The notes under the pieces were generated by a model. The model was not told the origin of the DNA. It saw only the letters and a list, made by a program, of their open reading frames with translations, and ran no database searches. From Convolutriloba macropyga (lineage: Eukaryota), in NCBI RefSeq assembly GCF_964194025.1, contig NC_134482.1, positions 29,202,001 through 29,266,000 on the forward strand: a stretch of DNA of 64,000 bases. The letters run 5' to 3'. Both the position numbers and the translations under genes were made by a program. How positions within the stretch are numbered: the first letter of the stretch is position 1; each line of letters begins with the position of its first letter. Below, in pieces: positions 23,301 to 47,473 of the stretch.

Positions 23301-25970
23301 AAAACTGGAATAATAAAATTGGTGTGCAAAATTTTTTGCCATAAAACATTTTTTCTCTCTGGCCTAAACAAGAAATTTCATATTGACCTTACCGGTGATA
23401 TAGCAGTAAGAAAACAAAATCTTATAAAAAACGTTGTATGATGATTTTTTTTATTAAAACAGCTTTTGATGACGGTGGCTAGTTTGATAGGCCCTGATAA
23501 ACGACATATTGAAGCCTCCAGTGACATCCATCTGAACTTTTTTATTGTTTTAACTGATTTTTTTTCAAGAAAAACGCTGTTTCTCTGACTCCAAGCACGT
23601 AGAACCACCACAACGGTTCCGTAACCACGATCTTTTTTCAAAAGTAGCCAGATGAGTTGAATGAAAGGCCTAGATCAAGCGAAAAAGTTGATCATAGTTT
23701 TTATGTGGTGATAATATAACGGTTTTTGGTGATATACTATGTTTATGGCGGAATTCGTAATTGTTCACCTTTCTTGGGCTTCCGATCCTTTCCAAAATGA
23801 CTCTATAGCCAAACCGCACTTCTACGGGGGTTTAAAAAAAAGCTGGAATAATAAAATTGGAGTGCAATTTTTTTGCCATAAAACATTTTTTCTCTCGGGC
23901 CTAAACACAAAATTTCATGTTGACCTTACCGGTGATATAGCAGTAAGAAAACAAAATCTGATAAAAAAACGTTGCTTCATGGATTTTTTTATTATTACGG
24001 CTTTCAATGACTGTGGCTAGTTTGTTAGGCACTGATAAACGTCATATCAGGGGCCTCCAGTGACATCAATCTGAGCTTTTTTTTATTGTTGTATCTGATT
24101 TTTTTTTCAAGAAAAACGCTGTTTCTCTGACTCCAAGCACATAGAACTACCACAACGGTTCCGTAACCACGATCTCTATTCATAAGCAGTCAGATGAGTT
24201 GAAAAACAGGCCTAGATTGCGCGAAAAAGTTGACCATAGTTTTTATGTGGTGATAATATAACGGTTTCTGGTGATATACTATGTTTATGGCGAAATTCGC
24301 AATTGGTCACTTTTCTTGGGCTTCCGATCCTTTCCAAAATCATTCTATAGCAAAACGGCACTTCTACTGAGGATAACAGAAAACTGGAATAATAAAATTG
24401 GTGTGCAAAATTTTTTGCCATAAAACATTTTTTCTCTCTGGCCTAAACAAGAAATTTCATATTGACCTTACCGGTGATATAGCAGTAAGAAAACAAAATC
24501 TTATAAAAAACGTTGTATGATGATTTTTTTATTAATACAGCTTTTGATGACTGTGGCTAGTTTGATAGGCCCTGATAAACGTCATATTGAAGCCTCCAGT
24601 GAGTGACATCCATCTGAGCTTTTTTATTGTTTTAACTGATTTTTTTTCAAGAAAAACGCTGTTTCTCTGACTCCAAGCACGTAGAACCACCACAACGGTT
24701 CCGTAACCACGATCTTTATTCAAAAGTAGCCAGATGAGTTGAATGAAAGGCCTAGATCAAGCGAAAAAGTTGATCATAGTTTTTATGTGGTGATAATATA
24801 ACGGTTTTTGGTGATATACTATGTTTATGGCGGAATTCGTAATTGTTCACCTTTCTTGGGCTTCCGATCCTTTCCAAAATGACTCTATAGCCAAACGGCA
24901 CTTCTACGGGGGTTTAAAAAAAAGCTGGAACAATAAAATTGGAGTGCATTTTTTTTGCCATAAAACATTTTTTCTCTCGGGCCTAAACACAAAATTTCAT
25001 GTTGACCTTACCGGTGATATAGCAGTAAGAAAACAAAATCTGATAAAAAACGTTGCTTCATGGATTTTTTTATTATTACGGCTTTCAATGACTGTGGCTA
25101 GTTTGTTAGGCCCTGATAAACGTCATATCAGGGGCCTCCAATGACATCAATCTGAGCTTTTTTTTATTGTTGTATCTGATTTTTTTTCAAGAAAAACGCT
25201 GTTTCTCTGACTCCAAGCACATAGAACTACCACAACGGTTCCGTAACCACGATCTCTATTCATAAGCAGTCAGATGAGTTGAAAAACAGGCCTAGATTGC
25301 GCGAAAGTTGACCATAGGCTTTTTATGGTGATAATATAACGTTTTTTAGTGATCTACTAAGTTTTTGGCGAAGTTCGTAAATAGTCACATTTCTTGAGCT
25401 TCCAGTCCTTTCCAAAATCATTCTATAGCAAAACTGCACTTCTACTGAGGCTAACAAAAGCTGGAAAACTGAAATGGGGTCCCAAAAATAATTTTTGGCC
25501 TTAAAACAATCATTGTCTCGGGCCTAAACGGAAAATTTCATTTTGACTGTACCGGTGATAAGAATACAAAATATTATTAAAAAAATGTTGTTTGATGGTT
25601 TTCTCACACAAAATAGCTTTCAATGACTGTGGTTAGGTTGTTAGGATCTGATAAACGTCATATCAAAGCCTCCAGTAATATCCATCCAAGCTTTTATTTT
25701 GTTTTGTCTGACTTTTTCCAAGAAAATCACTGCTTCTATGACTCGAAGCGCATGGAATCACAACAAGGGTCCAGTTATTTTAATCGCTAAATATACATCA
25801 ATATCGGATATATATCAGGGGTCTATTAGACCAAAAAAGGTGACCATAAGTTCTTTGTGGCGACAACAGAACGCTTTTTGATGGTATAATATGTACAAGG
25901 CGAAATTCGAAATTGTAACTCTTCTTTAACCTAGGAACCATTCCAAACTCATTCTATGGCAAATCGGCAC
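14330..25970. repeat. AT-rich satellite array, ~537-bp monomer, about 22 copies
   Basis: The marker gaaccaccacaacgg recurs every ~537 bp from ~14471 to ~25223, plus a degenerate copy near 25754. Repeated shadow ORFs confirm the period. Confidence 0.95.
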
Positions 25971-28264
25971 TATTAATTTACCGGCAAGAAGTACCATGTG
26001 TTGTTTTCTTGCGAAAACCATTTTTGGTTGTGCTAATACCGGTGTTTTCAGTTGTCTAACAAAGGAAATTGGCAAAAAACAATGTTCGAAGCGTTTTGTT
26101 TGAGTTATACCGTGACCACTGCTTCATATAATTAAAACTCAATAACATCGATACACAGTGAACAGTAAAAGACCAGTAGAAGTAATTTGTTTCATGATTT
26201 GACTGCATACAAAAGGTTTAAACGTCCAAGTTTTGAAGTTTCGGGAGTTCGGTTTAGTCAGCTCCAAACTCCCTGTTTTCAGGTTTTTCCTGTTTCCGCT
26301 CAATCATGGGTTGGAAAACAGTGTATCTAGCATTTTTTAGACCTCCACTTGGCCACCTAACATGCTGATGATAGCTGATTTGCGAATTTACAATTTATGA
26401 ACTTTTCTTTGATTTTGAACGTTTTTTTTATGCAAAAAGACAAACATTCAGTGAAATTGTAGTGCAGGGTCACGAAGACTTTTGAAAGAGTTGCATAGGT
26501 AGGAGTGACTCTTAGAATGGCCCGGACAACAAAAGTCCAGCCATTGAATTGCGTTGCAAAGGCTGGTATTGGTGATTTCGGGGGTTTTGATGGTACTGGA
26601 TCGGAGAGCAATTTTTTTGCCATAAAACATTTTTTCTCTCGGGCCTAAACACAAAATTTCATGTTGACCTTACCGGTGATATAGCAGTAAGAAAACAAAA
26701 TCTGATAAAAAACGTTGCTTCATGGATTTTTTATTATTACGGCTTTCAATGACTGTGGCTAGTTTGTTAGGCCCTGATAAACGTCATATCAGGGGCCTCC
26801 AGTGACATCAATCTGAGCTTTTTTTTATTGTGGTATCTGATTTTTTTTCAAGAAAAACGCTGTTTCTCTGACTCCAAGCACATAGAACTACCACAACGGT
26901 TCCGTAACCACGATCTCTATTCATAAGCAGTCAGATGAGTTGAAAAACAGGCCTAGATTGCGCGAAAGTTGATCATAGGCTTTTTATGGTGATAATATAA
27001 CGTTTTTTGGTGATCTACTAAGTTTATGGCGAAGTTCGTAAATAGTCACATTTCTTGAGCTTCCAGTCCTTTCCAAAATCATTCTATAGCAAAACTGCAC
27101 TTCTACTGAGGCTAACAAAAGCTGGAAAACTGAAATGGGGTCCCAAAAATAATTTTTGGCCTTAAAACAATCATTGTCTCGGGCCTAAACGGAAAATTTC
27201 ATTTTGACTGTACCGGTGATAAGAATACAAAATATTATTAAAAAAATGTTGTTTGATGGTTTTCTCACACAAAATAGCTTTCAATGACTGTGGTTAGGTT
27301 GTTAGGATCTGATAAACGTCATATCAAAGCCTCCAGTAATATCCATCCAAGCTTTTATTTTGTTTTGTCTGACTTTTTCCAAGAAAATCACTGCTTCTAT
27401 GACTCGAAGCGCATGGAATCACAACAAGGGTCCAGTTATTTTAATCGCTAAATATACATCAATATCGGATATATATCAGGGGTCTATTAGACCAAAAAAG
27501 GTGACCATAAGTTCTTTGTGGCGACAACAGAACGCTTTTTGATGGTATAATATGTACAAGGCGAAATTCGAAATTGTAACTCTTCTTTAACCTAGGAACC
27601 ATTCCAAACTCATTCTATGGCAAATCGGCACTATTAATTTACCGGCAAGAAGTACCATGTGTTGTTTTCTTGTGAAAACCATTTTTGGTTGTGCTAATAC
27701 CGGTGTTTTCAGTTGTCTAACAAAGGAAATTGGCAAAAAACAATGTTCGAAGCGTTTTGTTTGAGTTATACCGTGACCACTGCTTCATATAATTAAAACT
27801 CAATAACATCGATACACAGTGAACAGTAAAAGACCAGTAGAAGTAATTTGTTTCATGATTTGACTGCATACAAAAGGTTTAAACGTCCAAGTTTTGAAGT
27901 TTCGGGAGTTCGGTTTAGTCAGCTCCAAACTCCCTGTTTTCAGGTTTTTCCTGTTTCCGCTCAATCATGGGTTGGAAAACAGTGTATCTAGCATTTTTTA
28001 GACCTCCATTTGGCCACCTAACATGCTGATGATAGCTGATTTGCGAATTTACAATTTATTAACTTTTCTTTGATTTTGAACGTTTTTTTTTATGCAAAAA
28101 GACAAACATTCAGTGAAATTGTAGTGCAGGGTCACGAAGACTTTTGAAAGAGTTGCATAGGTAGGAGTGACTCTTAGAATGGCCCGGACAACAAAAGTCC
28201 AGCCATTGAATTGCGTTGCAAAGGCTGGTATTGGTGATTTCGGGGGTTTTGATGGTACTGGATC
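24941..28264. repeat. Recent ~1661-bp tandem duplication covering the satellite end and adjacent unique DNA
   Basis: Identical ORFs at 25699 and 27360 (offset 1661). At the junction near 26603, ggtactggatcg runs back into satellite sequence. Confidence 0.92.
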
Positions 28265-28739: not shown

Positions 28740-29330
28740 GGACCGCGTATAGGCTTTTGTGAACCAGGGTGTGATTTTTAGCCGGTACATGGGGCGCAAT
28801 TTTCGACCCAAATAGTGGTCTGTACCGAACCTGCGGAGATGGAAAAAGTATGTTAAAAAGGTACTTTTAGTGATGTTTATAGGTTATTTATAACGCCCAC
28901 TATATGTAGTTACTCATGAACCATGGTTGTATGCAGGTTTTCTGGTATCTAGATGGTGTATTTTGCCGGTACAGGGGTCCTAACATCCGACCCTTATAGA
29001 GGGGGTACATAACCTGCGGAGATGAAAAAAGTGTGTTAAAAATGTCTTTTTAGTGTCGTCTATAGGCTATTTATAACCCCTATTATATGTAGTTACTCAT
29101 GAACCATGGTTGTATGTAGGTTTTCGGGGATCTAGATGGTGTATTTTGCCGGTACAGGGGTCCTAACATCCGACCCTAATAGAGGGGTACCTTAGCTGCG
29201 GAGATGAAAAAAATGTGTTAAAAATGTGCTTTTAGTGTCGTCTATAGGCTATTTATAACCCCCATTATATGTAGTTACTCATGAACCATGGTTATATGTA
29301 GGTTTTCGTGGATATAGATGGTGTATTTTG
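28740..29330. repeat. ~182-183-bp tandem repeat, 3-4 copies, with a further degenerate copy near 29560-29710
   Basis: gatggtgtattttg recurs at ~28952, 29135 and 29317. tatatgtagttactcatgaaccatgg occurs three times. Confidence 0.85.
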
Positions 29331-31009
29331 ACTCCATAGGGGGGTGGGGGGTGGTAAGTGGCCTCATTTTGAGCGATGGTACGAAACACCAAACTGTTGA
29401 TTAATATGTGAATAGTGAAGCAAATCTGGTTCTGTTTTATTCACCAGGCTCGTCGTGTATTGTACTACCAAACTGAGGGGGTCGCACATCGACTACTGTT
29501 TGATATTTGGATGGTACTTTGGCCCCTATTTTGGCCTCAAAATTGTCGTATGTACCACAGCGGTGGAGGCGATTGAAATGTGTTTAAAATGTACTTACGG
29601 AGTTGTGTATAGGCTATATAGACCCCCAATTATATGTAGTTTCTGGCGAGCTCAGTTTGTATACACGATTTCGGGCATCAAGATGATGTATTTTGCCTCT
29701 GTATAGCGGTACATGGCCATGTTTGTAGTATGGGGCCAACTCACTGCATTGAAAGCTGTTTGTAAATCGTTTACAGGTGTGTGGTACTCTTTGTAGAGGT
29801 TTGTAATAATGTTTCAAGGGTCCCCTGGGAGTGTCACCCTCAGGGGTGATTTCTCTGATGTTTGACACACGTCATTTTCTTTGATCACATTTGTACTTTG
29901 GGTACTAGTACTGTTCCTTAAAATTTCCATATATCATCTTAGAGCGACCCCATTGTGGCTCTGTTTTTTTTTATTTGAGCCTGTCTAATGATGTGTGTGT
30001 ATACAGATAACAAAAGGGTTGCGTGTAATGTTTCTTGAGAAAGTGTTGAAAAATAACCAAAACTTTGTCCACTTTTTTTATTCAGTCAAAGGAAATTTAG
30101 TGTTCTTCCTTCTGGCTGACTTGTTCTTCACTGTCCCTCCGCTATTAATATTATTATACTAATACTAATGTTGGTAGCGTATAGCTGCTGGCTAGTGAAA
30201 TCCGCCCGGTGTTGGTTTGTTTTGGTTTTGATGTTGTTATCATTTTTATTTTAGTATTTCTATTTCAGTTCTTGTTTGGTTTTGCTGCTGTTGTTCAGCT
30301 CTCTTCTGTCGCCTGCCTTCCTACATTCTATAGGTGAGAGCCCCCTTCTGTTTAGGCTAGCCGGTTAGCAAGGAAAAGATATTTTCGTTTGTTTAGTTGT
30401 GAAAAATATGGATAAGGCCGAAAAGCAAAAAGTTTCCGAAACCCGAAAAAATTATTTAAACCATATTTGTGATTATATAGTGAGCGCATTTAATATTTGT
30501 CCTGCTTTTAGTCCTTCTTCCGTGTGCTAGGAGAGCCTAAATGATAACTCCAAGTAGTTAATAGTGCAAATTTTCTTTTTTCAACGAAAAAATATGGCTT
30601 GACCAAAGATCTTCATTTTTTTCATGTCTCGTAAAACTTATCAAAAAGCAAGTAGTCCATTCTTCTGAGAGTCCCACTTAAAACAGATGTGTCCATTGAG
30701 GTACAGCGGAAGCATCCAATCTGCCTTTGTGTAAAATCTGGACAAATCTTAAAACCAACTTTATCCTATCTAATATACGAGAAATGAAAAACTTGAAAAA
30801 CTTTGGTTAAGAAAATTTTTTTCGTCGAAAAGAAGCGTTTTTGTTATAGTAACAGTTTGGAATTATAGCGAAGTTTTTCCTCGCACACACAAGAAGTACT
30901 ACAGGCGGTATAAGTTTTAAATGTGTTTAGTATATAATATCTTTAAAAAAATGTGCTCTTGTAAAAAAAAAAGTTTAGTTCGGGTTGCGTTCAGAATGGA
31001 ATGAAAATT

Positions 31010-31037
31010 AAAATGCGCTCTGTCAGGGACGCGTTTT
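31010..31037 (+). promoter_or_regulatory. Conserved-loop hairpin, copy 1
   Basis: aaaatgcg-CTCTGTCAGGGA-cgcgtttt (one G.T pair). Confidence 0.65.
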
Positions 31038-31094
31038 GGTTTACATCAAGAACAAAATTTTGAGAGTCATTTCGTTTTCTAGTCTTCACTGCCA

Positions 31095-31835
31095 ATGAGG
31101 TAAGAATTGGGTTCTGTGTTTTATATTTAAATGACTCAAAAGTTTCTTCTCAATTTTAAATTATGCTCGAATTAAACTTTTTGCTCTAATCATGCTCGAA
31201 TCGAAAAATTTTTTAGCCATGAGTCGACTTCCAGAGGCTACAAAAAATCAGCCCGAATGATCGAAAAAGAGGCCGCTGCTCTCAATGTTTCCGACTGCGA
31301 ATTGCCACCCAACTGGTTTTATTTGTTTTACTTCGAAACTGATGATAAATTTAGTAAAATTCCGGCAGATAGTCCAAGGTGGCCTTTGGACTATAAGAAC
31401 TCCCAGAAGGTCTCTCTGATGTACGGAGATCAGGTTGATATTATCTGTTATGCTCATTGAGGAAAAGCATTAGGAGAATTCAAATATCAAGGATATGAAA
31501 AGGATGTCAATAAATACCTGCGTGAATTATGTCAGTCTAACGGCGCTGCTGCGAGGGAGGAAGCTGTCAATATAGGATGCGGTAGCTCTCAGGGCAGCAA
31601 TCGAAATGACAACAATCAAAATGATCGGCCAAGTTGCAGCCCGGAAATTGGTTTACCATCATCGCAAAGCCGACTTGTGATCGATAATGAGGCAGTTGCG
31701 GACGAACCACCCTTCGTTGACGCATTGGTAGAGGATTACTTCGGTCGCGCGGCCAAAAAGTCTAAGAAATCAAAAACCCCAGAAGGAGGAGCAGCTTGTT
31801 CGTCATCAAGCCAGTCGGATGAAGTAAGAATTTAG
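31095..31835 (+). pseudogene. Transposon gene A, 5' part (spliced; one in-frame TGA)
   Basis: Exon ATGAG (31095-31099), GT-AG intron 31100-31216, then one reading frame MSHESTSRGY...QSDE broken only by TGA at 31458-31460. A strong donor GAA|gtaaga at 31824 suggests splicing to the downstream BEN-like exon. Confidence 0.6.
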
Positions 31836-31850
31836 TTCAAAAAATCAAGT

Positions 31851-31880
31851 CTTCATGTGCTCTGACAGGGACACATGAAG
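31851..31880 (+). promoter_or_regulatory. Conserved-loop hairpin, copy 2
   Basis: cttcatgtg-CTCTGACAGGGA-cacatgaag (perfect 9-bp stem). Confidence 0.65.
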
Positions 31881-32055
31881 TTTTTCTCCACAAAAATAAT
31901 TTTTGACCAATGAGATTACTGCAAAACCATTTAGGATTACTTTTAGTATGTTAAGTAAATTGATGGTCAATGTGATTGTTAGGAAGATATTTGTTGCTAT
32001 CTCAAATCGACAAACTATTGGCTCTAGAAATTTTCAATAACTCTTAAATACTTTT

Positions 32056-32598
32056 TTGAAAGAGTTCACTTGGGAGCGGTTCCAATTCGTTATGACAAAA
32101 ATTGAGAAAAGGCTGGACGCCGCTACAGATGTGATGCGTTCATTGAAGACCTTTGGGAGGAAAGCCATGGAGGAACTCAACCGGCTTCATGAAAATGCCG
32201 AGCAAAACAGAGATGACCCGATTGAAGAAAACGAACGCTCCTTCGAAGTTGAATCGCTGATGTATAATGGTGTTAATCTCTTGGGATTGGGTGGCAACAC
32301 ACCCCGTGAACGTGCTCTTCTTATTGCTAACAAAATTTGGACCCCCGAGGAAAGGAAAAAATACTGCATTGCTCCAAGGAAATTGCTCATAGGTGAGAGG
32401 GAGCCAGCAGACGAGGAACGAACAGAAGTTTTTCGTAGCGCTTTGATGGGTGTTTTGAACAACGATTTCAATGAGGTGAAATACCGTGATATTCTCAGGT
32501 ACGTAAACCAACAAGGTGTGGATATGCAACGAAAGCGAATGTCAGTTGGAAACGAAAATCGTAATCCTGAAACTGATTCTAGTCAAGAGGACGCTTAA
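32056..32598 (+). CDS. Coiled-coil plus BEN-like domain protein (probably the last exon of gene A)
   Basis: TPRERALLIANKIWTPEER...REPADEERTEVFRSAL...ILRYVNQQGVDMQRKR follows the BEN helical pattern (lF/WT.eE, LDp.r..ir, In.k...rr). The TTG start is not a real eukaryotic start, and the acceptor is unresolved. Confidence 0.7.
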   Translation: MKEFTWERFQFVMTKIEKRLDAATDVMRSLKTFGRKAMEELNRLHENAEQNRDDPIEENERSFEVESLMYNGVNLLGLGGNTPRERALLIANKIWTPEERKKYCIAPRKLLIGEREPADEERTEVFRSALMGVLNNDFNEVKYRDILRYVNQQGVDMQRKRMSVGNENRNPETDSSQEDA

Positions 32599-32623
32599 AA
32601 GCTGTTACAATGAAATACGTGTG

Positions 32624-32647
32624 CTTGTGCTCTGTCAGGGACACAAG
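32624..32647 (+). promoter_or_regulatory. Conserved-loop hairpin, copy 3
   Basis: cttgtg-CTCTGTCAGGGA-cacaag, 25 nt after the stop at 32598. Confidence 0.65.
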
Positions 32648-33127
32648 AACATTTAAAAAACGGCTTGCTTCTGAAAGCGAAAAGTCTTTCTGGATTTTTT
32701 TCTTTTGTTCTATTTTGATGCCAGTTCTTTTGATTTCTTGTTTTATGACTGAAGATTTGAGCTCTCATATTTGTGCTGTTTTATTCAATTGCTGCGTGCC
32801 ATTGGACAAAAGTACAAAAACTTTTCTCATGGGGCTAGTATTCATTTTGATTTTGGGGCTATAATACAAATATGACCTACTTGTTTTGCGGCCAACTTTC
32901 CTATTGTTCTGATGTATGCTTTATTCAATATTTGAGAGGCCACTTAATTAGCGTTTGAATTTTTTGCATGATTCATCTCGCGCATTAATAAAATAATAGC
33001 TTGGCGAACGTTTTTAACAGCTCTGGATCAAAAGTGAAGGCAACTGAATTTGTCGTGCGTGTCTATATAGGAATTTTAGGTTTGCTCAAATTGTGATTTT
33101 TTTCAGAATAAATTGAAAAGTTGAAAA

Positions 33128-33944
33128 ATGCCTGGTCAAAACCAACCCAGGTTTCGCCCGAACAGAAACGCCGTCAATGTTCTTAAGAGAATTGAAGAGG
33201 CACTAAGACAATTAGACATGGCTCAGGTGGATGCAGTCAACTTTTTGCTTTGGGCTGCAAAATCATTGAGAAAAATTGTAAGCTTTTTTTTAAATTGCTT
33301 TCAGTCAAAGTTTGTGGCATTTATATTAGCCCTGTTGGTCTTTTTGTGCTTTTTTTCCTGGACTGATGTTTTGCATGAACGATCGAACATTATGAGCAAT
33401 TGATAAAGCAATCCCCGTGTGCACCCCTCTACTGGATATCCGGCCACGAACCCTTTCGCTTGAAACCTGTCGCTTGAGAGCAATTAAGCTGACCGTAGTT
33501 GGTTACGTTCAAAACTAAAATTATTCTTTTTTGTCATAGAACGTTAAACAGAGTCAAAAACAACGGAAAAACCCGAATAATCGGCTGATGTATAAAAATC
33601 GAAATCTCTTGGCCTACAGTGGTGCAAGCGATGACTACTCAGGGTACGGCAAGTTTTTAACGAGGTGCATCCTATCAAAAAAGGAACGAAAAATAACTTG
33701 CTGGTTTGCACAACGATCGGTCAGGGACGGACGCGTACCAGCCTCTGAGGAAGATGAAAGTTATTTTCGAGGTTTAAATTTTTCGAACTTCAGTTTTTTT
33801 CGGAGTTTTTAATTTTTTTTACTTACGACATAAATTTTAGAAGCAGTCAGACGGTTCTGTGGGGACAGCCTCTATGCCCTGAGACGTGTAAAGGATGCTG
33901 CCAATGCGTACGGCATTCATGAAAGAAAGCAACGGTTCGGCTAA
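33128..33944 (+). CDS. Gene B: three-exon, 161-aa BEN-like paralogue (exons 33128-33277, 33540-33771, 33841-33944)
   Basis: Two GT-AG introns (phase 0 and phase 1) give an uninterrupted ORF. The product aligns with 32056-32598 (LMY...NLL...G, ERK..C, R.PA.EE....FR.A, N..G). AATAAA lies at 34012. Confidence 0.75.
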
Positions 33945-34017
33945 AGCAAAGATGATGCATGAAACATGAACTGAATTACGAAACTGATTTTAGGTTGTTA
34001 AGAAACGAGAAAATAAA

Positions 34018-34039
34018 TGGCGCTCTGACAGGGACGCTA
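34018..34039 (+). promoter_or_regulatory. Conserved-loop hairpin, copy 4
   Basis: tggcg-CTCTGACAGGGA-cgcta (one G.T pair), with AATAAA on both sides. Confidence 0.6.
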
Positions 34040-34220
34040 ATAAAGTTTCTTTTTTGGCTAAGTTACTCCTCTTGTTTCAAAATATAATGTCAATCTAATT
34101 GAATTTTTGGAATATTTTTAATGTCTTGAGGCTTTAAAGAATCTCAGGAAAAATTGGTTTATCCCTCTCCCAATAAAATTCTAGCTTATCTGACTAATTT
34201 AACTATGCTTTTTAAGATTC

Positions 34221-36851
34221 ATGGCACAGGGATTGTTTAATTACTATTTCAACGCCTCCAAAAACTTTTCCAGGTCCATTGTGACGTGGAAACAGCTAGC
34301 TAGGGTTGATCAACAACTAACTTCTAAGTGGGTGGACACAGAAACTGTTTCATCGCATAAGATTCTCATAGAGGGTGAGGAAGTACACAACGATGACATC
34401 ACCTCAATGCATAAGTTCCTTGACGACGAGTACTGCAAAAGTATGCTATCGGTTGAATACAAAACTGTAAGTTACTTACCAAATGAGGACTACGTTCAAT
34501 TAGGTCTGTATACGAAATCTGATATTCAAAAAGGTGAAGTAGTAAATGGTGTCATAGGATTTCTGTCAGAAATTACTGATGCGGAGATAATACCAGGTTT
34601 TAATGACGTGTCAGTTTTATGCAGTAAAATGAGAGATGAGCAATGGCTTATGCTAGGTCCAATTTCTTTCGTTAATGCTTCCTGTAGGTCGAACGTCGAA
34701 TACAGACAAAAAGGTAGATTAGTGGTTTGCGTTGCCACAAAGAATATTAGCACGGGCGATGAATTAACTGTTTTTTACAATCGTCATTATTTTGGCAAGT
34801 TTAACATCAATTGTCTCTGCCCCTACAAAAGCGAGCATGGTGACCCTTGTCCAAACGATCCCGAGCCGGTAAGAAAACGCAAAAAAATAACCGAACAGTT
34901 AATTACGACACCAAGTTTCTCCTCTTTAGAATCGTCTATTCCCGAAACTCCAATAAGAAGAATTGTACTTGAAAAACTGCCCCCTAGACGCTCGCTATAC
35001 GAAATTTCGAGTTCTTCAAATGTTGATCAAGAATCTTACTTGAGCTATAACAGTTTTTTTAGGAAAATTGATCAATCCCTAAGCCCCCAAAAAATAAGTA
35101 CACCTGTTCGCTGCGACCCGATCACAAGTTCGTCTCCGAGCGGTTTTTCTGTTTCTCCGCAGCCGCCTCAAGATCAAACTCTTTCGGACGTTTTTGGTAC
35201 TCCTATAATGTTAGGTAATTTTGAAACAGAAAATGTTAAAGAAAGAAACAGTCAAACCCAGTTCAATAACGGTAATGAAATCTTTAGTGCTTTTCAGGTG
35301 CAAGAGGAAGGAACAGAGTTGTTCGAGGGAGCCAGTCTTTCAACTGAAGGCTTCATGAAGGACTTTGAAGCTTTGTCTGATAAGCATAAGCTACCAAAAA
35401 TTGCAAAAATTGATTTGTTGAAGCTTTTTGCTAAGGCACTTCCAGTACCTAATAATCTTTTTGCTAAACTGTCTATGCCATTTTTACCAGCCCTTACATC
35501 TAATGTGTATGAAAGTGGTAAGTTTGTTTGTGTGGACCTGAAAACGCAGCTCGAAAAAATTTTAATCCGAAATTCGACTTATATTTTGAAGTCTTGGCAA
35601 GACGATTATCCCTGGTTTACTCAATGGGACAACTTCAAAAGTAATGAGGTACAATTAGTTTTAAATGTAGACGGTGCATCAGTTTTCAAGTCATCTAAAA
35701 TATCTGTTTGGCCGACTTGGGTTCAAGTTTTCAATTTGCCCCCAAAACTACGGGGTGCTTTTTCAAATCTTTCTCTCCTAGGTCTTTGGCATGGAAGATC
35801 AAAACCACTTTTTGATAAGCTTTTGCCCCTAATTGTGTTTGAAATCGAGTCTTTGTGCGAGCCAATTATGCTCATTGAGGGTTTAGGAACTATCAGTTTT
35901 CGGATCAGAACCATTGTCGCAGACATGCCAGCGACGGCAAGTGTTTTATGTATGAATCAATTTAACGGCTACTCTTCATGTCCTCATTGTTTCATAAAAG
36001 GCTTTTGGCAAAATTATAGGATGCTGTTTTCCGTGACAAAACCCTTCAAACTTCGCGAAAATAAGGATTTCAAAGCCTGCGGTTGGGCAGCTGAGCGAGA
36101 TGGCGATATCAAATGTGGCATTAAGTCTTCAACCCCCCTCAATAGTATCTTAGATTTACCTTGGGATTGTCCAATTGATCCAATGCACCAAGTTTTTCTG
36201 GGTACAGGTAAAGTTTTGACGAAATTGCTTGTATCTTTGGCTAAGTCAAAATTGAAGGAAGCAAATAACTTAATGATGCAAGTTAAAGTACCTTTCGATA
36301 TTTTGCACCGAATAAAGTCTTTAGATGAGATCAAGTTCTGGAAAGCTTTCGATCTCAAATTGTTTTTTTTTCATGTGGGACCTCTTGTTTTTAGAAAAAT
36401 TCCCGTCCGTAGGGTTTTGTATAAAAGCTTCTGCGTGCTCAGCACAGCCATGAGACTGCTCTCTCAACAAACGGCAACCGAAGCTCACATTAAGTCAGCA
36501 GATGAGCTCATAACTCTTTTTTTCAGTAATTTTGTAGAACTTTACGGAGTGGATTCGCAGTCATTCAACTTTCATACAATGCAACACTTATGTGAACAGG
36601 TTAGGCGCAACGGACCCCTTTGGCTTTTTTCGGCCTTTTGTTTTGAGTCTGCAAATCACAACCTTCTAAGTGCTGTTCAAGGGACAATTAAAGAACCAGA
36701 GGCTATAGTTCAACAGTTTATTAAGCACCAAGCTGCGATTAATTGCACTACTAATAATCAAGCTGAAAAATATCTCAAGGGGCTGACAACGGTAGACGAC
36801 GAGACTCTACGTTTTTGCGATAATAAGAATATTTCCTCTTTTTTTTTCTAG
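34221..36851 (+). CDS. SET domain (SUV4-20/Set9-like) fused to a CMC/EnSpm-type DDE transposase
   Basis: aa ~93-200 form the SET domain: GFNDVSV, LMLGPISFVNASCRSN, GDELTVFY, YFGKFNINCLC. An NLS-like RKRKK and an S/P-rich linker follow. Transposase motifs: NVDG (D484), VWP, VADMPA (D568), GYSSCPHC, DPMH, HTMQHL, GPLWLFSAFCFES (E809). Confidence 0.9.
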   Translation: MAQGLFNYYFNASKNFSRSIVTWKQLARVDQQLTSKWVDTETVSSHKILIEGEEVHNDDITSMHKFLDDEYCKSMLSVEYKTVSYLPNEDYVQLGLYTKSDIQKGEVVNGVIGFLSEITDAEIIPGFNDVSVLCSKMRDEQWLMLGPISFVNASCRSNVEYRQKGRLVVCVATKNISTGDELTVFYNRHYFGKFNINCLCPYKSEHGDPCPNDPEPVRKRKKITEQLITTPSFSSLESSIPETPIRRIVLEKLPPRRSLYEISSSSNVDQESYLSYNSFFRKIDQSLSPQKISTPVRCDPITSSSPSGFSVSPQPPQDQTLSDVFGTPIMLGNFETENVKERNSQTQFNNGNEIFSAFQVQEEGTELFEGASLSTEGFMKDFEALSDKHKLPKIAKIDLLKLFAKALPVPNNLFAKLSMPFLPALTSNVYESGKFVCVDLKTQLEKILIRNSTYILKSWQDDYPWFTQWDNFKSNEVQLVLNVDGASVFKSSKISVWPTWVQVFNLPPKLRGAFSNLSLLGLWHGRSKPLFDKLLPLIVFEIESLCEPIMLIEGLGTISFRIRTIVADMPATASVLCMNQFNGYSSCPHCFIKGFWQNYRMLFSVTKPFKLRENKDFKACGWAAERDGDIKCGIKSSTPLNSILDLPWDCPIDPMHQVFLGTGKVLTKLLVSLAKSKLKEANNLMMQVKVPFDILHRIKSLDEIKFWKAFDLKLFFFHVGPLVFRKIPVRRVLYKSFCVLSTAMRLLSQQTATEAHIKSADELITLFFSNFVELYGVDSQSFNFHTMQHLCEQVRRNGPLWLFSAFCFESANHNLLSAVQGTIKEPEAIVQQFIKHQAAINCTTNNQAEKYLKGLTTVDDETLRFCDNKNISSFFF

Positions 36852-37194
36852 GTTTATCAATAAAAGTGGTCAATGTTTTGGCTCGCTATCCTATTCCAGA
36901 CTTAACAATAACTTGGGAGAATGCGTAATTCAATTAGGCGACGGTCGTTTCTTTCGTGTTAGTACGTACTGTTCAATTTCTGATGTGTCATATGCTGTTG
37001 GTAGACCTGCTACTAGTGCCCGCAATTTAAATTTGACTTGTACTTCTGATAATTTTGGCCTAATATACGAACTTTTTGGTTTAGGGTCTATGGAAATGGT
37101 TCCCACTTGTAACTTAAAGCACAAGACTGTAGTTTTTGTTGAGCAAAATTTTCTCATCGTGAGTGTCATAAGAGAAGGATTCGAGCATAATTGA
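36847..37194 (+). CDS. Frameshifted C-terminus of the SET-transposase
   Basis: Removing one T from the T9 run at 36839-36847 joins ...ISSFF to SRFINKSGQCFGSLSYSR...GFEHN, giving a 990-aa protein. Confidence 0.7.
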   Translation, partial: SRFINKSGQCFGSLSYSRLNNNLGECVIQLGDGRFFRVSTYCSISDVSYAVGRPATSARNLNLTCTSDNFGLIYELFGLGSMEMVPTCNLKHKTVVFVEQNFLIVSVIREGFEHN

Positions 37195-37272
37195 GATGAA
37201 GAAACTTTTTTTTTGTTTTGTTATTGAATGAAAGCTTCTGTACGTAATTTGCGTTTAATTAATCACAAAAAA

Positions 37273-37300
37273 TCAAGCTGCGCTGTCAGGGCCAGCTTGG
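37273..37300 (+). promoter_or_regulatory. Conserved-loop hairpin, copy 5
   Basis: tcaagctg-CGCTGTCAGGGC-cagcttgg, ending 7 nt before the SGNH ATG. Confidence 0.6.
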
Positions 37301-37307
37301 GAAAAAA

Positions 37308-37871
37308 ATGTATTCAATCGAAGCGTGTTTTAGTCCATCAATCGTTATAGTCGGGGACAGCAACCTGGTGAGGATTCAAAACGAACTTGAAATTGATGTT
37401 GTTCTCCGGCCCTATAAAATCACTCTTCATTGCAGACCCAGCTTCCGAGCTGCCTTTTTGAACGGCGAAGATGTAGTGTTTTGTGCCAATTTCACCCATT
37501 GCATACTTCTATTAGGAAACAATGACATCTCACAACACCCTAACAAACCTTGGCTGACCCCTGAAACTCCTTTAAAAACTGCTGCTAGGCTGTGTGGCTT
37601 CGCAAAGAGACTACAAGAAAATTCTGTCGAAGTTAAAGTTGTCGGTCTTTTAAATCGGCCAGATACGGAATACGAGCCCATACAACAGACTAATATTTTT
37701 TTTCAAAACTTTATGCAAACTGATTACGTTGGTCCTCGTTATGTGAGGCCCATTCATTTTCTTAAAGAAAACATTCCATATGATTTGGCGCATTTGAATG
37801 AGGACGGCAAAAAGCGAGTGCTCGCTCTGTTCCTCAGTATATTGACCACCAGATTTGAAGTTCACCCCTAG
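37308..37871 (+). CDS. SGNH/GDSL hydrolase-fold protein (187 aa)
   Basis: Block I VIVGDS, block III LLLGNND and block V DLAHLN, in the correct order and spacing. Confidence 0.85.
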   Translation: MYSIEACFSPSIVIVGDSNLVRIQNELEIDVVLRPYKITLHCRPSFRAAFLNGEDVVFCANFTHCILLLGNNDISQHPNKPWLTPETPLKTAARLCGFAKRLQENSVEVKVVGLLNRPDTEYEPIQQTNIFFQNFMQTDYVGPRYVRPIHFLKENIPYDLAHLNEDGKKRVLALFLSILTTRFEVHP

Positions 37872-38330
37872 TGTTCATGTTCTGAAAAGTTATGTTAACG
37901 TAAGAAATTGGTTGTTGATTGATTAGGTGCTCTCTCGGAATGCTAGATCTTAACAATTCAGTTTCTTGAACCAACATTTTTCAAAATTCTTGTTGTCCTA
38001 TAATAAAAGTTTTTGTAAAAAACAAAGAAAAAATAGTTGACAGAAAAAAATAAAACAAAAAAAGCTTCTTTCTCTTTCAATCCTTCTGTTCCTAATATTG
38101 TTTTCAAGAAGAAAGCAAAAAATGAAAACAGTTAAAAACTCAGTAAAAAGCGAAAATAAATGTTTAATTCGAAACATAAAAAACTACCCAAAATTTAATT
38201 TGGTCTTATTACAGAGCGTACTTTAATGAACGAAAATTGAAAATTCTCTTGCTTTCTCAAATATTGTTTCGAAGAGCATGCTGGTTTTGAGCACGGTAGG
38301 AAAAAACCAACTGCAATTTTTAAATGAAAA

Positions 38331-38352
38331 ATGTGCTCTGACAGGGACACAT
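38331..38352 (+). promoter_or_regulatory. Conserved-loop hairpin, copy 6
   Basis: atgtg-CTCTGACAGGGA-cacat. Confidence 0.6.
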
Positions 38353-38679
38353 AGATACTGACAATTGAAATTTTTTAGCTGCAGATAAATGCAAACGACA
38401 AGTACTCAAGTTTTTCCAAAAGTTGGTACAAAACATTAGGTACAGAAAATATTTTAAATTATGCAATAAAAAAAATCTTAAGTTGAAAAATGTTAAGCCA
38501 TTTTTTTGCCGAAGTGCTCTTCAAACTTATCCAATGAGAATGACCAGAGATGATCATAAAGTCTCAATGATAAAAGTTGTGCTGCAGCATTGATATCACG
38601 TAAATTTGCAGAAATGTTCTTGCGCAAGTTTTCAAACTTTTAAAATGCAATACGGTGTTGAAAAAAAAACGATAATAAC

Positions 38680-38711
38680 AATCTGTGTGATCTGGCAGGG
38701 ACACATAGATT
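38680..38711 (+). promoter_or_regulatory. Conserved-loop hairpin, copy 7
   Basis: aatctgtgtg-ATCTGGCAGGGA-cacatagatt (one G.T pair). Confidence 0.6.
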
Positions 38712-38829: not shown

Positions 38830-41800
38830 TCTTCTGCATGGACGTCGCGTCGCGTCTTCGGTTTGGGCGATAAGCTGTGTCGTTCCTCCTTTTCCTGTTT
38901 TCGGGTACTCTTAGTGCCCTCCGTTTTTTGCGCGATGCTTAGGCTTTGCTTTGTTTTGGGCACGTGCTTTGCCCCTGTTTGCTTGCGCCACGTAGGATTA
39001 AGGTTTTGCGTTGCTCTTTGTACCCCCTCCCATCTAAGGTTTTTGGCGCAGGCCTTAAGTGTTGCTTTGCCGGGCTTTGCTTTTGCCCATAGTGTGCTAA
39101 GGTTAGGGTGGGTGGTCTCTCCTTTGCCCGCGCCGTTTTAGGTGCCAGGTTTTTTGCGCTTCCGTTTCGCTTTTCCCTCCCCACTTGGGTTCCGGCGCGG
39201 CCTTTAGGTGTTTCTGGCTGGGCTTTGCTTTGCCCTGGTGTGCTCTGGCTCAGTTTGGGGGGTACCCTTGTGCTGAGGCGCTTGGGATTTCTTTGCTGTT
39301 CTGTGTTGTTCAGTTTTCTCTTTTTCTGCAGGATTCGGTGACACCCGAGGATAAGGAGACAACATGAGGAGGGCCTGGTGAGGTCCAGTTTGGGGGTTGG
39401 CTGGTGGGCGCGAGGGACTCTTCACTTGTGTTTGGTAAGTTCTGCCGCAGCTTTTTTTTGCGCGCTGCTTAGGCTTTGCTTTGTGGGCACGTGCTTTGCC
39501 CTTTCTGCCTGCGCCACTTAGGATTAAGGTTTTGCGTTGCTCTTTGTACCCCCTCCCATCTAGGCTTTTTGGCGCAGGCGTTAGGTGTTGCTTTGCCGGG
39601 CTTTGCTTTTGCCCATAGTGTGCTTAGGTTAGGGTGGGTGGTCTCTCCAGTGCCCGCGCCGATTTAGGAGCTAGGTTTTTCGCGCTTCCGTTTCGCTTTT
39701 CCCTCCCCACTTAGGTTTCGGCGCGGGCTTTAGGTGTTTCTTGCTGCGCTTTGCTTTGCCCTGGTGTGCTTTGGCTCGGTTTGGGGGGGGGGGTACCCTT
39801 GCGCTTATGCGCTTGGGATTTCTTTGCTGTTCTGTGTTCAGTTTTCTCTTTTTCTGCAGGATTCGGTGACACCCGAGGACGAGGAGACAACACGAGGAGG
39901 TCCTGGTGAGGTCCAGTTTGGGGGCTGGCTGGTGGGCACGAGGGACTCTTCACTTCTGTTTGGTAAGTTCTGCCGCAGCTTTTTTTGCGCGCTGCTTAGG
40001 CTTTGCTTTGTGGGCACGTGCTTTGCCCTTTTTGCCTGCGCCACTTAGGATTAAGGTTTTGCGTTGCTCTTTGTACCCCCTCCCATCTAGGCTTTTTGGC
40101 GCAGGCCTTAGGTGTTGCTTTGCTTTTGCCCATAGGGTGCTTAGGTTAGGGTGGGAGGTCTCTCTTTTGCCCGCGCCGATTTAGGAGCTAGGTTTTTCGC
40201 GCTTCCGTTTCGCTTTTCCCTCCCCACTTAGGTTTCGGCGCGGGCTTTAGGTGTTTCTTGCTGGGCTTTGCTTTGCCCTGGTGTGCTTTGGCTGAGTTTG
40301 GGTGGGGGGTACCCTTGCGCTTATGCGCTTGGGATTTCTTTGCTGTTCTGTAATGTTCAGTTTTCTCTTTTTCTGCAGGATTCGGTGACACCCGAGGACG
40401 AGGAGACGACACCCGAGGAGCCCTGGGTGGTGGAGACGACCTTTGGTGTTGGTGGTGGAGTCATCACCCCTTCTGCATGGACTTCGCGTCTTCGGTTTGG
40501 TCGGTAAGCTGTGTCGTTCCCCCCTTTTCCTGTTTTCGGGCACTCTTAGTGCTCCCCGCTTTTTGCGCGCTGCTTAGGCTTTGCTTTGTTTTGGGCACGT
40601 GCTTTGCCCTTTTTGCCTGCGCCACTTAGGATTAAGGTTTTGCGTTGCTCTTTGTACCCCCTCCCATCTAGGCTTTTTGGCGCAGGCCTTAGGTGTTGCT
40701 TTGCCGGGCTTTGCTTTTGCCCATAGGGTGCTTAGGTTAGGGTGGGAGGTCTCTCCTTTGCCCGCGCCGATTTAGGAGCTAGGTTTTTCGCGCTTCCGTT
40801 TCGCTTTTCGCTCCCCACTTAGGTTTCGGCGCGGGCTTTAGGTGTTTCTTGCTGGGCTTTGCTTTGCCCTGGTGTGCTTTGGCTCGGTTTGGGGGGTGGG
40901 GGGGTACCCTTGCGCTTAGGCGCTTGGAATTTCTTTGCTGTTCTGTGTTGTTCAGTTTTCTCTTTTTCTGCAGGATTCGGTGACACCCGAGGACGAGGAG
41001 ACGACACCCGAGGAGCCCTGGGTGGTGGAGACGACCTTTGGTGTTGGTGGTGGAGTCGTCACCCCTTCTGCATGGACTTCGCGTCTTCGGTTTGGTCGGT
41101 AAGCTGTGTCGTTCCCCCCTTTTCCTGTTTTCGGTCACTCTTAGTGCTCCCCGCTTTTTGCGCGCTGCTTAGGCTTTGCTTTGTTTTGGGCACGTGCTTT
41201 GCCCTTTTTGCCTGCGCCACTTAGGATTAAGGTTTTGCGTTGCTCTTTGTACCCCCTCCCATCTAGGCTTTTTGGCGCAGGCCTTAGGTGTTGCTTTGCC
41301 GGGCTTTGCTTTTGCCCATAGGGTGCTTAGGTTAGGGTGGGAGGTCTCTCCTTTGCCCGCGCCGATTTAGGAGCTAGGTTTTTCGCGCTTCCGTTTCGCT
41401 TTTCCCTCCCCACTTAGGTTTCGGCGCGGGCTTTAGGTGTTTCTTGCTGGGCTTTGCTTTGCCCTGGTGTGCTTTGGCTCGGTTTGGGGGGTGGGGGGGT
41501 ACCCTTGCGCTTAGGCGCTGGGAATTTCTTTGCTGTTCTGTGTTGTTCAGTTTTCTCTTTTTCTGCAGGATTCGGTGACACCCGAGGACGAGGAGACGAC
41601 ACCCGAGGAGCCCTGGGTGGTGGAGACAACCTTTGGTGTTGGTGGTGGAGTTGTCACCCCTTCTGCATGGACTTCGCGTCTTCGGTTTGGTCGGTAAGCT
41701 ATGCCGTTCCCCCCCCTTTTCCTGTTTTCGGGCACTCTTAGTGCTCTCCGCTTTTTGCGCGCTGCTTAGGCTTTGCTTTGTTTTGGGCACGTGCTTTGCC

Positions 41801-47309: not shown

Positions 47310-47473
47310 TGTTAATCTTGCAAGATCTTGCAAGAGGATGTTAATCTTGCAAGAAAATCTTGCAAAAAAATGTTAATCTTGCAAGATCTTGCAAGAAAAT
47401 CTTGCAAGATTATGCATAATCTTGCAAGATCTTGCAAGATTCTTGCAAGATTAACATCCTAAATCGACTAGGG
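47310..47473 (-). repeat. Right subterminal repeats and TIR
   Basis: Multiple tcttgcaaga units ending gattaacatcctaaatcgactaggg, the inverse of the left end. Confidence 0.9.

Follow-up and report, generated by a model that had tools for sequence, protein, structure and literature searches.

Covarying, strand-specific hairpins at the gene boundaries of a eukaryotic Mirage/CACTA-type transposon

We report a selected, strand-specific hairpin that recurs within the gene cassette of a Mirage/CACTA-type DNA transposon from an AT-rich eukaryote, where it precedes the first gene and trails each of five genes, always outside the open reading frames (ORFs). The stretch of DNA analysed, referred to here as the window, is 64 kb in length and carries seven copies of the hairpin. 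The explanation that we favour, and which we hold to be somewhat probable, is that these are cis-acting RNA hairpins on the sense transcripts of the transposon, which are read by a co-evolving factor and which mark transcript boundaries.

The seven hairpins lie between positions 31005 and 38711, all on the + strand, and have stems of 5–13 bp whose sequence varies from copy to copy. Their core, CTGNCAGGG, is found on the + strand at 31020, 31862, 32632, 34025, 37283, 38338 and 38692 and is surrounded by contiguous stems of 13, 9, 6, 5, 8, 5 and 10 bp, respectively. Hairpin 1 (31005–31042), whose stem includes 3 G.T pairs, lies 180 nt 5' of the ATG of gene A and has a GT donor-like site approximately 57 nt beyond it. 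Hairpin 2 (31851–31880) starts 15 nt past the stop codon of gene A, hairpin 3 (32624–32647) 25 nt past that of gene B and hairpin 4 (34018–34039), which has AATAAA on either side, 73 nt past that of gene C. Hairpin 5 (37273–37300), in which the apical pair is a G...C variant, occupies the 114-nt gap between the stop codon of the transposase and the ATG of an SGNH-like gene, starting 79 nt past the former and ending 8 nt 5' of the latter. Hairpin 6 (38331–38352) lies about 460 nt past the SGNH-like stop codon and hairpin 7 (38680–38711), which starts about 810 nt past a stop codon, is about 120 nt 5' of the right-hand of two tandem arrays.

An earlier note on this DNA had described seven hairpins of one orientation that share a motif, and both the cores and the stems were recovered at a frequency above chance: the pattern given there, allowing at most one mismatch, has nine matches in the window against 1.1 expected, a number that none of 100 shuffles equals. 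Its range of 5–10 bp for the stems holds for all but the first, which is 13 bp rather than the 8 bp quoted. The two extra one-mismatch matches, at 33715 (in a coding exon) and 56180, have stems of only 0–1 bp, as do two more exact matches to the core, at 56142 on the + strand and 59666 on the - strand. A covariance model, built on 25 copies and run over both strands of the window, returns the seven hairpins only, in agreement with the claim that no copy lies outside the cassette. Over approximately 290 kb searched on both strands, every match falls inside an element gene cassette and on the sense strand.

To examine the structure, 25 distinct copies drawn from five elements were aligned without gaps, with shuffled alignments and slid pairing partners as controls. 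Paired cells amount to 84%, against 60% in the shuffles, and the score for covariation reaches 0.673, compared with 0.205 in the shuffles and at most 0.20 with the partners slid; in neither case did any of 500 shuffles equal the observed value. Changes on both sides are seen in 10 of the 13 pairs. At the five stem positions next to the loop every copy is paired, with 2–5 types of pair per position; the loop is closed by G-C in all copies but one, which has G.U. Compensatory changes thus exceed those of both controls, as is generally expected of a structured cis-acting RNA, and the stems do, as had been suggested, differ between copies and still pair. The '12-nt loop' of the earlier description is conserved in sequence but is not an open loop: it consists of a 1-nt 5' bulge, three pairs and a pentaloop. 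Loop positions 2 and 12 covary (UA in 18 copies, GC in 7, unpaired in none) and form the first pair of a 3-bp apical helix that reads U-A or G-C, then C-G, then U.G. Positions 1, 4 and 5 of the pentaloop are constant, while the outer helix is free in sequence and capped by the near-constant G-C closing pair.

Across the hairpin copies, including those of sister elements, there are 13 internal G.T pairs and no A.C pairs, and therefore the sense strand alone folds. In the seven window stems, the six pairs that depart from the Watson-Crick rules are all G.T when read on the + strand, which is the coding strand, just as had been reported. When the + strand is folded as RNA, z scores of -2.6 to -4.3 are obtained; the fold of the - strand is markedly worse in two tested copies that have internal G.T pairs and slightly worse in a third. 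The folded molecule is most likely RNA rather than single-stranded DNA, since the element has a DDE transposase and we know of no single-stranded DNA stage in DDE cut-and-paste transposition; the hairpins would then act as RNA.

The carrier extends from 14074 to 47473 on the + strand (33.4 kb), its bounds being the start and end of collinear identity, at 92–97%, to two further copies (L008 and L009). It is bounded at either end by terminal inverted repeats (TIRs) of approximately 190 bp, at 14074–14263 and 47298–47473, whose first 10 nt are identical. Each terminus holds nine copies of a 10-bp palindrome that the rest of the window lacks and to which the transposase or the BEN proteins probably bind. 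Two internal tandem arrays enclose the cassette: the left (14325–26600) has a period of approximately 537 bp and a copy number that varies among element copies, and the right (38830–46951), with a period of approximately 530–590 bp, has a + strand rich in G+T and shares homology with the array 3' of the cassette in L001/L002. No matching target-site duplication is readable at the two complete copies, those of the window and L008. The transposase is of the Transposase_21/DUF1258 DDE type, as in the CMC (CACTA/Mirage/Chapaev) elements, and the carrier is a Mirage/CACTA-type DNA transposon.

Five genes are encoded, all on the + strand. Gene A (31219–31835) specifies an orphan protein whose N-terminal domain is Tudor-like and is broken in the window copy by one in-frame stop and one frame change relative to P0056. 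Gene B (32056–32598), whose frame is open, combines an N-terminal coiled coil with a C-terminal BEN-fold domain, of which gene C (33128–33944; three exons common to its relatives) encodes a paralogue (hhalign probability 96% for protein C against B). The earlier identification of BEN proteins holds at the level of the fold, where the top 14 PDB matches are all BEN domains (BANP, Bsg25A, Insv, BEND6, NACC1), with a probability of 1.0 for the top six, a target TM of approximately 0.6 and E = 0.04, but not in sequence searches: proteins B and C match neither the Pfam BEN HMM nor any entry in a PDB sequence-profile search. The transposase (34221–37194), broken here by one frameshift relative to P0001, is a SET domain fused to a DDE domain of DUF1258/Transposase_21 type (DUF1258 35.6 bits against a cut-off of 33.1; Transposase_21 sub-threshold). 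DUF1258 corresponds to the Mirage group (PMC3985635). The fifth gene (37308–37871; frame open) encodes protein E, an SGNH-like hydrolase with GDS, GxND and DxxH blocks. In five relatives GNND and D..H are invariant, and GDS is present wherever the N-terminus is included. The SGNH assignment made previously has these conserved motifs in its favour; there is no Pfam match, and the sole sequence match is to a viral haemagglutinin-esterase at E = 0.5. A Pfam search of the element gave no HUH, tyrosine-recombinase or Rep/helicase gene, and an RNase III gene was not found in it. The presence of introns implies nuclear expression. A look-up by exact protein sequence gave the genomic contig alone. No RNA-binding domain is recognisable in the Tudor-like, BEN-like, SET-transposase or SGNH-like proteins, an observation that counts against the boundary reading.

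Sister elements, with transposase identities of 54–64%, have hairpins with different stems at the same positions relative to the genes. The intergenic DNA between elements can no longer be aligned, and the apical positions and compensatory stems are still kept. The order A-B-C-transposase-SGNH and the single orientation are retained in six sister loci, and the G...C apical variant is found at the position of hairpin 5 in the window, L001/L002, L004, L005 and L006. Subfamilies further removed, L003/L007 and L012, have apical motifs of their own, on the + strand and with G.T pairs, variant types II and III being based on few distinct stems. That apical motifs differ among subfamilies of one genome suggests a co-evolving reader. 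In the decayed copy L008, four of the seven cores are mutated. The family is one of satellite-bearing elements of 18–33 kb, and two members carry the hairpin in tandem arrays (with a 91-bp period in L003 and as three copies in L004), an arrangement more in keeping with a platform for binding than with a terminator.

The position claimed for the hairpins, outside the coding sequence, before gene A and after the ORFs, is upheld, at 180 nt on the 5' side and from 15 to about 810 nt on the 3' side. Taking the window and the sister elements together, most copies start 3–80 nt past a stop codon, and the first hairpin lies 160–180 nt 5' of the ATG of gene A in two subfamilies. Neither hairpin 1, being 5' of the first gene, nor hairpin 5, being so close to an ATG, is in a classic 3' UTR, which speaks against a boundary role. 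Adenine is enriched in the 5' flank (51%, compared with 34%). The adjoining AATAAA signals of the earlier note are only partly substantiated: a PAS-like hexamer is found 5–16 nt ahead of the stem in 8 of the 26 copies, where the background rate is 9.7%. Canonical poly(A) hexamers near only about one third of copies are a further point against the boundary reading. Acceptor-like sites (polypyrimidine-AG) are seen 2–30 nt 5' of several start codons: in the window, those of the transposase and of genes A, B and C, and in L001, those of the transposase, A1 and A2. Hairpins and acceptor-like sites are spaced 8 to about 455 nt apart, and there are intergenic gaps of 230–530 nt.

No match at the Rfam 15 gathering level, including the histone 3' stem-loop, IRE, SECIS, snoRNA and miRNA families, was obtained in 129 kb. 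Scans of the cassette by E-value gave sub-threshold matches only, nearly all of which either miss the hairpins or lie on the - strand; one alone overlaps a hairpin on the + strand, Chlorobi-1 on hairpin 3, and its 12.3 bits fall short of the family's threshold of 50. We found neither an Rfam family nor a paper that matches the motif. A Helitron 3' end or SINE tail was rejected in view of the seven internal copies, the ~190-bp TIRs, the DDE transposase and the lack of any Rep/helicase match in Pfam. The earlier note had named such an end, a random genomic distribution and a failure to covary in homologous elements as findings contrary to its proposal, in which the coding strand bears a structure under selection as RNA (or ssDNA). 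None of these results was obtained: the hairpins are syntenic relative to the genes of a TIR transposon with a Mirage-type transposase, they are confined to the cassettes in the approximately 290 kb searched and their covariation is strong; the proposal is supported.

Several known systems come close. Like the histone mRNA 3' stem-loop (Histone3), whose dedicated reader, SLBP, defines the 3' end of the mRNA and protects it, this is a short conserved hairpin soon past the stop codons of a gene set, but here the outer stem is free, the apex comprises a bulge, 3 bp and a pentaloop, and the motif is private to a transposon, changes among subfamilies and has one copy 5' of the first gene. The likeness is one of design with the packaging signals scattered along ssRNA virus genomes and with nascent-RNA hairpins of the phage boxB or retroviral TAR type, which also combine a loop-plus-bulge motif with variable stems and are recognised by a cognate protein from the same genome with which the motif co-evolves; the present carrier, in contrast, is a cut-and-paste transposon with no evident capsid or arginine-rich antiterminator-like gene. 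Bacterial REP and integron attC sequences, imperfect palindromes with a conserved core and variable arms that lie between co-oriented genes and function on one strand, depend on RAYT or the integron integrase, and attC cassettes are shuffled; they were rejected as candidates, the element being eukaryotic, with a fixed gene order and with neither a tyrosine recombinase nor an HUH (RAYT) gene. En/Spm (CACTA) shares the Transposase_21/DUF1258 superfamily, TIRs with short subterminal repeat arrays, accessory proteins that bind DNA and indications of leader splicing (En/Spm transcripts are alternatively spliced), but its TnpA-binding repeats are duplex DNA at the ends whereas these hairpins are internal, intergenic, single-strand-specific and covarying; we know of no described counterpart in CMC elements. 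In the Mimiviridae, a 'hairpin rule' applies, by which palindromic hairpins of variable sequence, trailing the genes of an AT-rich array, mark transcript cleavage and polyadenylation (PMC4402537). Those hairpins have no conserved apical motif and are cut in the cytoplasm by a virus-encoded RNase III, unlike the present ones, with their invariant apical module and their intron-containing genes.

We infer from these data an action as RNA, a protein reader and a 3'-boundary role. The hairpins would be carried on the element's own sense transcripts, one in the leader region before gene A and one shortly 3' of every ORF, and the apical module would be read sequence-specifically by a factor co-evolving with the element, as the differing motifs of subfamilies in the same genome suggest. 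Their likeliest task would be to define or protect the 3' end of each cistron, with the 5'-side hairpin acting as a stop for read-in.

A different role for the same RNA is conceivable, though we think it doubtful: repeated sites may gather the element's Tudor-like, SET or BEN proteins, or a factor for export, translation or localisation, just as the hairpin repeats of chromatin-regulating RNAs and the dispersed packaging signals of RNA viruses act as recruitment sites. Multiple copies per transcript unit, the tandem arrays, a hairpin in the 5' leader region and a chromatin-type protein set all fit such recruitment, and the subfamily-private motifs imply an element-encoded partner; however, no encoded fold is that of a known hairpin-RNA binder, and recruitment needs neither the regular post-stop placement nor the enrichment of PAS-like hexamers. 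It is less likely again that a five-gene pre-mRNA is cut at the hairpins, with downstream ORFs gaining a leader by cis-splicing or by SL trans-splicing. The acceptor-like sites, the donor-like site after hairpin 1, the location of hairpin 5 between two closely spaced genes and the one orientation and gene order of every subfamily would agree with this, but the intergenic gaps leave space for separate promoters, the spacing from hairpin to acceptor is inconstant and Rfam finds no spliced-leader or other RNA in the 129 kb.

Signals acting as DNA, by extrusion of one strand or as duplex sites for the BEN proteins or transposase in recombination, replication or a chromatin boundary, much as integron attC sites, REP elements or Helitron ends act, we judge improbable. 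Modules of a gene followed by a hairpin do recall cassette arrays, two predicted DNA-binding BEN-fold proteins are encoded and the core contains a CTG/CAG half-palindrome. Yet covarying arms are superfluous to a duplex-binding site, the 13 G.T pairs would be unfavourable in a cruciform, each being an A.C mismatch on the opposite strand, gene order is unshuffled, the enzymes expected of such systems (HUH, tyrosine recombinase, Rep/helicase) are missing beside the DDE transposase and the terminal palindrome is the likelier protein target. Disfavoured, and in our view very improbable, is a functionless by-product, be it tiny palindromic insertion footprints or a mutational artefact between genes: AT-rich intergenic DNA often contains short palindromes and four of the seven cores of L008 are mutated, but apical positions and compensatory stems outlast the alignability of the surrounding DNA, and neither the strict strand and G.T-only biases nor the absence of hairpins from coding sequence and from the DNA searched outside the elements would be expected.

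Cut-and-paste DNA transposons are usually described through their ends and their transposase, and post-transcriptional signals belonging to them are, to our knowledge, hardly known. Here, a multi-gene transposon has a covarying, strand-specific hairpin at each gene boundary, with a motif that changes in concert between subfamilies and so points to a dedicated recognition system. The hairpin is a new RNA motif for catalogues of RNA families and a simple marker with which to find and subtype a family of elements encoding chromatin reader-, writer- and BEN-type proteins. A bolder reading, to which we give a low probability, is that the apical motif of each transcript would be read only by the protein of its own subfamily, perhaps a Tudor-like, SET or BEN module; the element could then recognise its nascent RNAs and use them to delimit cistrons or, acting in cis between the two satellite arrays, to impose its own chromatin state. 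If true, this would be a eukaryotic transposon counterpart of the logic of phage nut/boxB or viral packaging signals and, should the reader be encoded by the element, a tractable case of a mobile element that recognises its own transcripts.

The core CTGNCAGGG occurs seven times in the window, from 31020 to 38692 and on the + strand every time, and is flanked in these copies by complementary contiguous arms of 13, 9, 6, 5, 8, 5 and 10 bp. The earlier note had described seven + strand hairpins with stems that differ between copies and nevertheless pair, and this description holds for what we refer to as hairpins 1-7 (31005-38711). The 14-nt pattern of that note, with at most one mismatch allowed, has nine matches in the window against 1.1 expected, a number equalled in none of 100 shuffles; the surplus matches at 33715 (within a coding exon of gene C) and 56180 have stems of only 0-1 bp, as do two more exact matches to the core at 56142 (+) and 59666 (-). 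The seven stems contain six non-Watson-Crick pairs, and every one of them is G.T when read on the + strand, which is the coding strand, as had been claimed. Folded as RNA with RNAfold, the + strand copies form single hairpins with energies between -7.4 and -15.9 kcal/mol and z-scores between -2.6 and -4.3. On the - strand, folding is clearly weaker in two G.T-bearing copies (for hairpin 1, -4.5 kcal/mol against -15.9 kcal/mol on the + strand), and in the third copy tested, hairpin 5, the two strands are similar (-12.1 versus -14.7 kcal/mol).

A protein search with the SET-transposase of the element returned 20 close relatives (E ≤ 1e-114) in ENA assemblies and four distant matches; the JGI metagenomes searched held no relatives. 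Nineteen of the 20 close relatives come from the single assembly ERZ25071359, in which an exact-protein look-up places the window on contig ctg33375, this genomic contig being its sole match and no transcript appearing, and twelve relative loci (L001-L012) were fetched. Elements with 54-64% transposase identity (L001/L002, L004, L005 and L006) share the window's motif, on the gene strand and at equivalent sites relative to the genes, with stems unlike those of the window; the DNA of these elements can be aligned with that of the window only in coding sequence and across the right tandem array. A search of ~290 kb on both strands with R1, a covariance model of the hairpin of the kind that the earlier note had proposed, gave matches inside element cassettes only and on the + strand only, and additionally detected diverged hairpin copies absent from its building set. 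Of the two near-identical copies of the window element, L009 keeps all seven hairpins and L008, which is decayed, has four altered cores.

The stems were examined in A1, a gapless alignment of 25 distinct hairpin copies tested against one named structure. Pairing is seen in 84.3% of cells compared to 60.4% after shuffling, with none of 500 shuffles matching the observed value, and the covariation score of 0.673 compares with 0.205 for shuffled alignments and at most 0.20 when pairing partners are displaced by 1-3 columns. Every copy pairs at the five stem positions closest to the loop; four of the five use 3-5 pair types, and the loop-closing pair is G-C in 24 copies and G.U in one. Distinct 5-bp stem tops number 17. 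Thirteen G.T pairs lie inside stems with Watson-Crick pairing continuing on either side, no A.C mismatch is present and other mismatches number two. A signal in duplex DNA or a cruciform would be expected to accumulate G.T and A.C equally, and with the imbalance of 13 to 0, selection for folding therefore acts on the sense strand only. The hairpin is thus a selected, single-strand-specific structure on the coding strand, and the covarying stems that had been proposed are confirmed.

The conserved 12-nt loop of the earlier note, on the other hand, is not open and has a structure of its own. Amongst the 25 copies the closing G is present in all and the closing C in 24, and loop positions 3 (C), 4 (T), 5 (G), 8 (A), 9, 10 and 11 (each G) are invariant. 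The remaining positions vary: position 1 is C in 17 copies, A in seven and G in one; position 2 is T in 18 and G in seven; position 6 is A in 12, T in 11 and G in two; position 7 is C in 19 and A in six; and position 12 is A in 18 and C in seven. Positions 2 and 12 covary, as U-A in 18 copies and G-C in seven with none unpaired, and a C-G pair between positions 3 and 11 and a U.G pair between positions 4 and 10 are possible in every copy, from which we derive an apical module consisting of a 1-nt 5' bulge, a 3-bp helix and a pentaloop. Where position 1 is C, RNAfold favours an alternative apical pairing that joins this position to position 11 beneath a triloop; inspection of the aligned letters shows that 15 of the 25 copies cannot form this top. 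The bulge, 3-bp helix and pentaloop are preferred to the triloop fold since they covary. The G...C variant of the apical pair follows the transposase gene in the window, L001/L002, L004, L005 and L006, and its recurrence at one equivalent site across elements implies that each hairpin has been inherited with its position. Past gene B in L004 (6972-7002) and L005 (7040-7070) lies a variant top of 11 nt, which keeps the 3-bp apical helix and has a 4-nt loop in place of the pentaloop.

The hairpins all share one orientation and are restricted to non-coding DNA inside and around the cassette, in agreement with the earlier note. One hairpin lies 160-180 nt upstream of the ATG of gene A in two subfamilies; we considered that hairpin 1 might mark the end of an upstream gene and rejected this, there being no conserved upstream gene. 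Every gene has a hairpin downstream, which after genes A, B, C and the transposase begins 3-80 nt past the stop codon in the window and L001, and up to ~215 nt past it in other subfamilies. The hairpin following the last gene is farther downstream than those after the other genes, and two hairpins precede the right array. In L004, three identical hairpins of the window's kind (type I) at 12801, 13356 and 13894, past the SGNH-like gene, are spaced by ~545 bp and contained in a short tandem repeat. The 5' flank of the hairpins is rich in A (51%, compared to 34% in the non-coding DNA of the cassette), and U-richness was not found in the composition of the 3' flank. Three poly(A)-type hexamers were counted: one stands 5-16 nt 5' of the stem in 8 of 26 copies, compared to 9.7% of random 44-nt windows, such that the proposed proximity to AATAAA survives as an enrichment and fails as a general rule.

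The carrier of the cassette is a 33.4 kb element bounded at 14074 and 47473, as set by comparison with L008 and L009, which are 92-97% identical to the window. These two copies (L008 is 18 kb) depart from the window mainly in the unit number of the left array; in L008 the genes are fragmented and ~0.6 kb is missing inside gene C. The ends were recovered via these copies, a search for inverted repeats within 27-40 kb having missed the terminal inverted repeats, which are ~190 bp in length and identical over their first 10 nt; no target-site duplication was readable at the element ends. Each terminal repeat contains nine copies of the 10-bp palindrome TCTTGCAAGA (14098-14255 and 47316-47450), 18 in all against 0.13 expected and absent elsewhere in the window. 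Comparable to the subterminal repeats of En/Spm, this palindrome is a likely candidate for a duplex binding site of the BEN proteins or the transposase.

Within these ends lie a left tandem array of ~537 bp period (14325-26600), ~4 kb of unique non-coding DNA between this array and the gene cassette, and a G+T-rich right tandem array (38830-46951). The unique part carries a 183-bp tandem repeat of ~3 units (28768-29330) and an inverted repeat whose 56-nt arms are separated by 142 nt (30578-30831). The right array has a GC content of 55% and, on the + strand, an extreme skew of T over A (AT skew -0.6). A homologous array follows the cassette in L001/L002 (L001 15120-22400, L002 8140-16100; 66-74% identity between subfamilies), and this conservation makes the right array part of the element rather than a satellite of the insertion site. 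Outside the element, an LTR-retrotransposon fragment is indicated at 53000-57100 by ORFs and by 576 bp that match the end of L003 bearing RT and integrase, and short repeats at 2020-2631, 7747-7888 and 63863-63999, also found in the L008 flank at 85-90% identity, belong to a separate dispersed host repeat family.

The large ORF of the cassette encodes a SET domain, whose sole named sequence match is KMT5B, fused to a DUF1258/Transposase_21 transposase; DUF1258 corresponds to the Mirage group, near the CACTA transposases (PMC3985635). Protein A is an orphan, for which 1.8 billion representatives yield only 17 relatives, and its model contains a confident Tudor-like barrel, whose best PDB matches are the hybrid Tudor domains of KDM4A/B (probability 1.0, E = 0.02) and whose nearest folds are the KDM4A Tudor domains, including complexes with H4K20me3 and H3K23me3. 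Protein B combines a coiled coil with a BEN fold, protein C is a paralogue of the BEN part of B, and protein E has the SGNH motif blocks. The BEN and Tudor assignments rest on fold matches with modest E-values, and the set encoded at 31219-37871 looks like a chromatin toolkit of Tudor-like, SET and two BEN-fold proteins, accompanied by an SGNH-like hydrolase. The window copy carries a single frameshift in the transposase, and its gene A is interrupted by one stop and one frame change; the frames of gene B and the SGNH-like gene are open. A GT donor-like site past hairpin 1, along with the polypyrimidine-AG sites that precede most ATGs by 2-30 nt (together at 31099/31100, 31217, 32062, 33107 and 34216 in the window and 6075, 7195 and 9996 in L001), suggests that the cassette mRNAs may undergo leader splicing or spliced-leader trans-splicing.

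No single-stranded DNA stage is known for DDE transposons and the sense strand is that of the transcript, for which reasons the folded molecule would be sense RNA. A stem of free sequence bearing an invariant apical module is the classic design for protein-recognition hairpins, and the module would be read by a protein. The hairpins would then mark a transcript boundary, defining or protecting the 3' end and blocking read-in, a role that fits their placement, the A-rich 5' flank enriched in poly(A)-type hexamers, the copy before gene A and the two that precede the right array. For this reading as a whole, a protein-recognised sense-RNA hairpin acting as a transcript boundary, we put the chances at slightly better than even.

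The tandem arrays of hairpins and the chromatin-type protein set would also suit a platform for recruitment or tagging, a reading we consider unlikely. Punctuation of a polycistronic precursor, to which the polypyrimidine-AG sites 2-30 nt ahead of the ATGs of four genes and the donor-like site past hairpin 1 lend some weight, appears to us doubtful, and a signal at the DNA level, already confronted with the excess of G.T over A.C, is improbable. That structures covarying to this degree are a by-product without function we regard as very improbable indeed.

Four scans of Rfam, including that suggested in the earlier note, found no family matching the hairpins, and none of the sequence-defined families tested has them as members. 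In the literature the letters of the motif matched one unrelated primer and no paper containing the motif, and work on DUF1258 and CMC transposons provided a classification in which the hairpins are absent. Closest in design are the histone mRNA 3' stem-loop, the hairpin rule of the Mimiviridae (PMC4402537), dispersed viral packaging signals and the REP and attC palindromes of bacteria; attC-like shuffling of cassettes was rejected, as the gene order is fixed. We rate the hairpins as belonging with the cis-acting UTR or boundary hairpins. We are not aware of any earlier description of covarying, subfamily-specific hairpins that punctuate the genes of a eukaryotic cut-and-paste transposon.

More distant elements (L003, L007 and L012, with 36-49% transposase identity) keep the gene order, and the R1 search found no type-I hairpin in them. 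L003 and L007 share another apical sequence, of 11 nt, on stems of three kinds and past the transposase and SGNH-like genes; between genes A and B of L003 this hairpin is also repeated in tandem with a 91-bp period. A third kind is seen in L012, where a 4-nt loop is enclosed by a CTG triplet paired with a CAG triplet. These variants lie on the + strand only (L003 7286-7923 and 14342; L007 4739, 6418, 7764 and 8232; L012 6533, 6754 and 7916) and, as hairpin types II and III, are thinly sampled; L011, which comes from a second sample, shows no clear hairpin motif. Within these small samples, all copies of a subfamily change in concert within a single host genome, which speaks for a reader of the motif that co-evolves with the element and against a fixed factor of the host.
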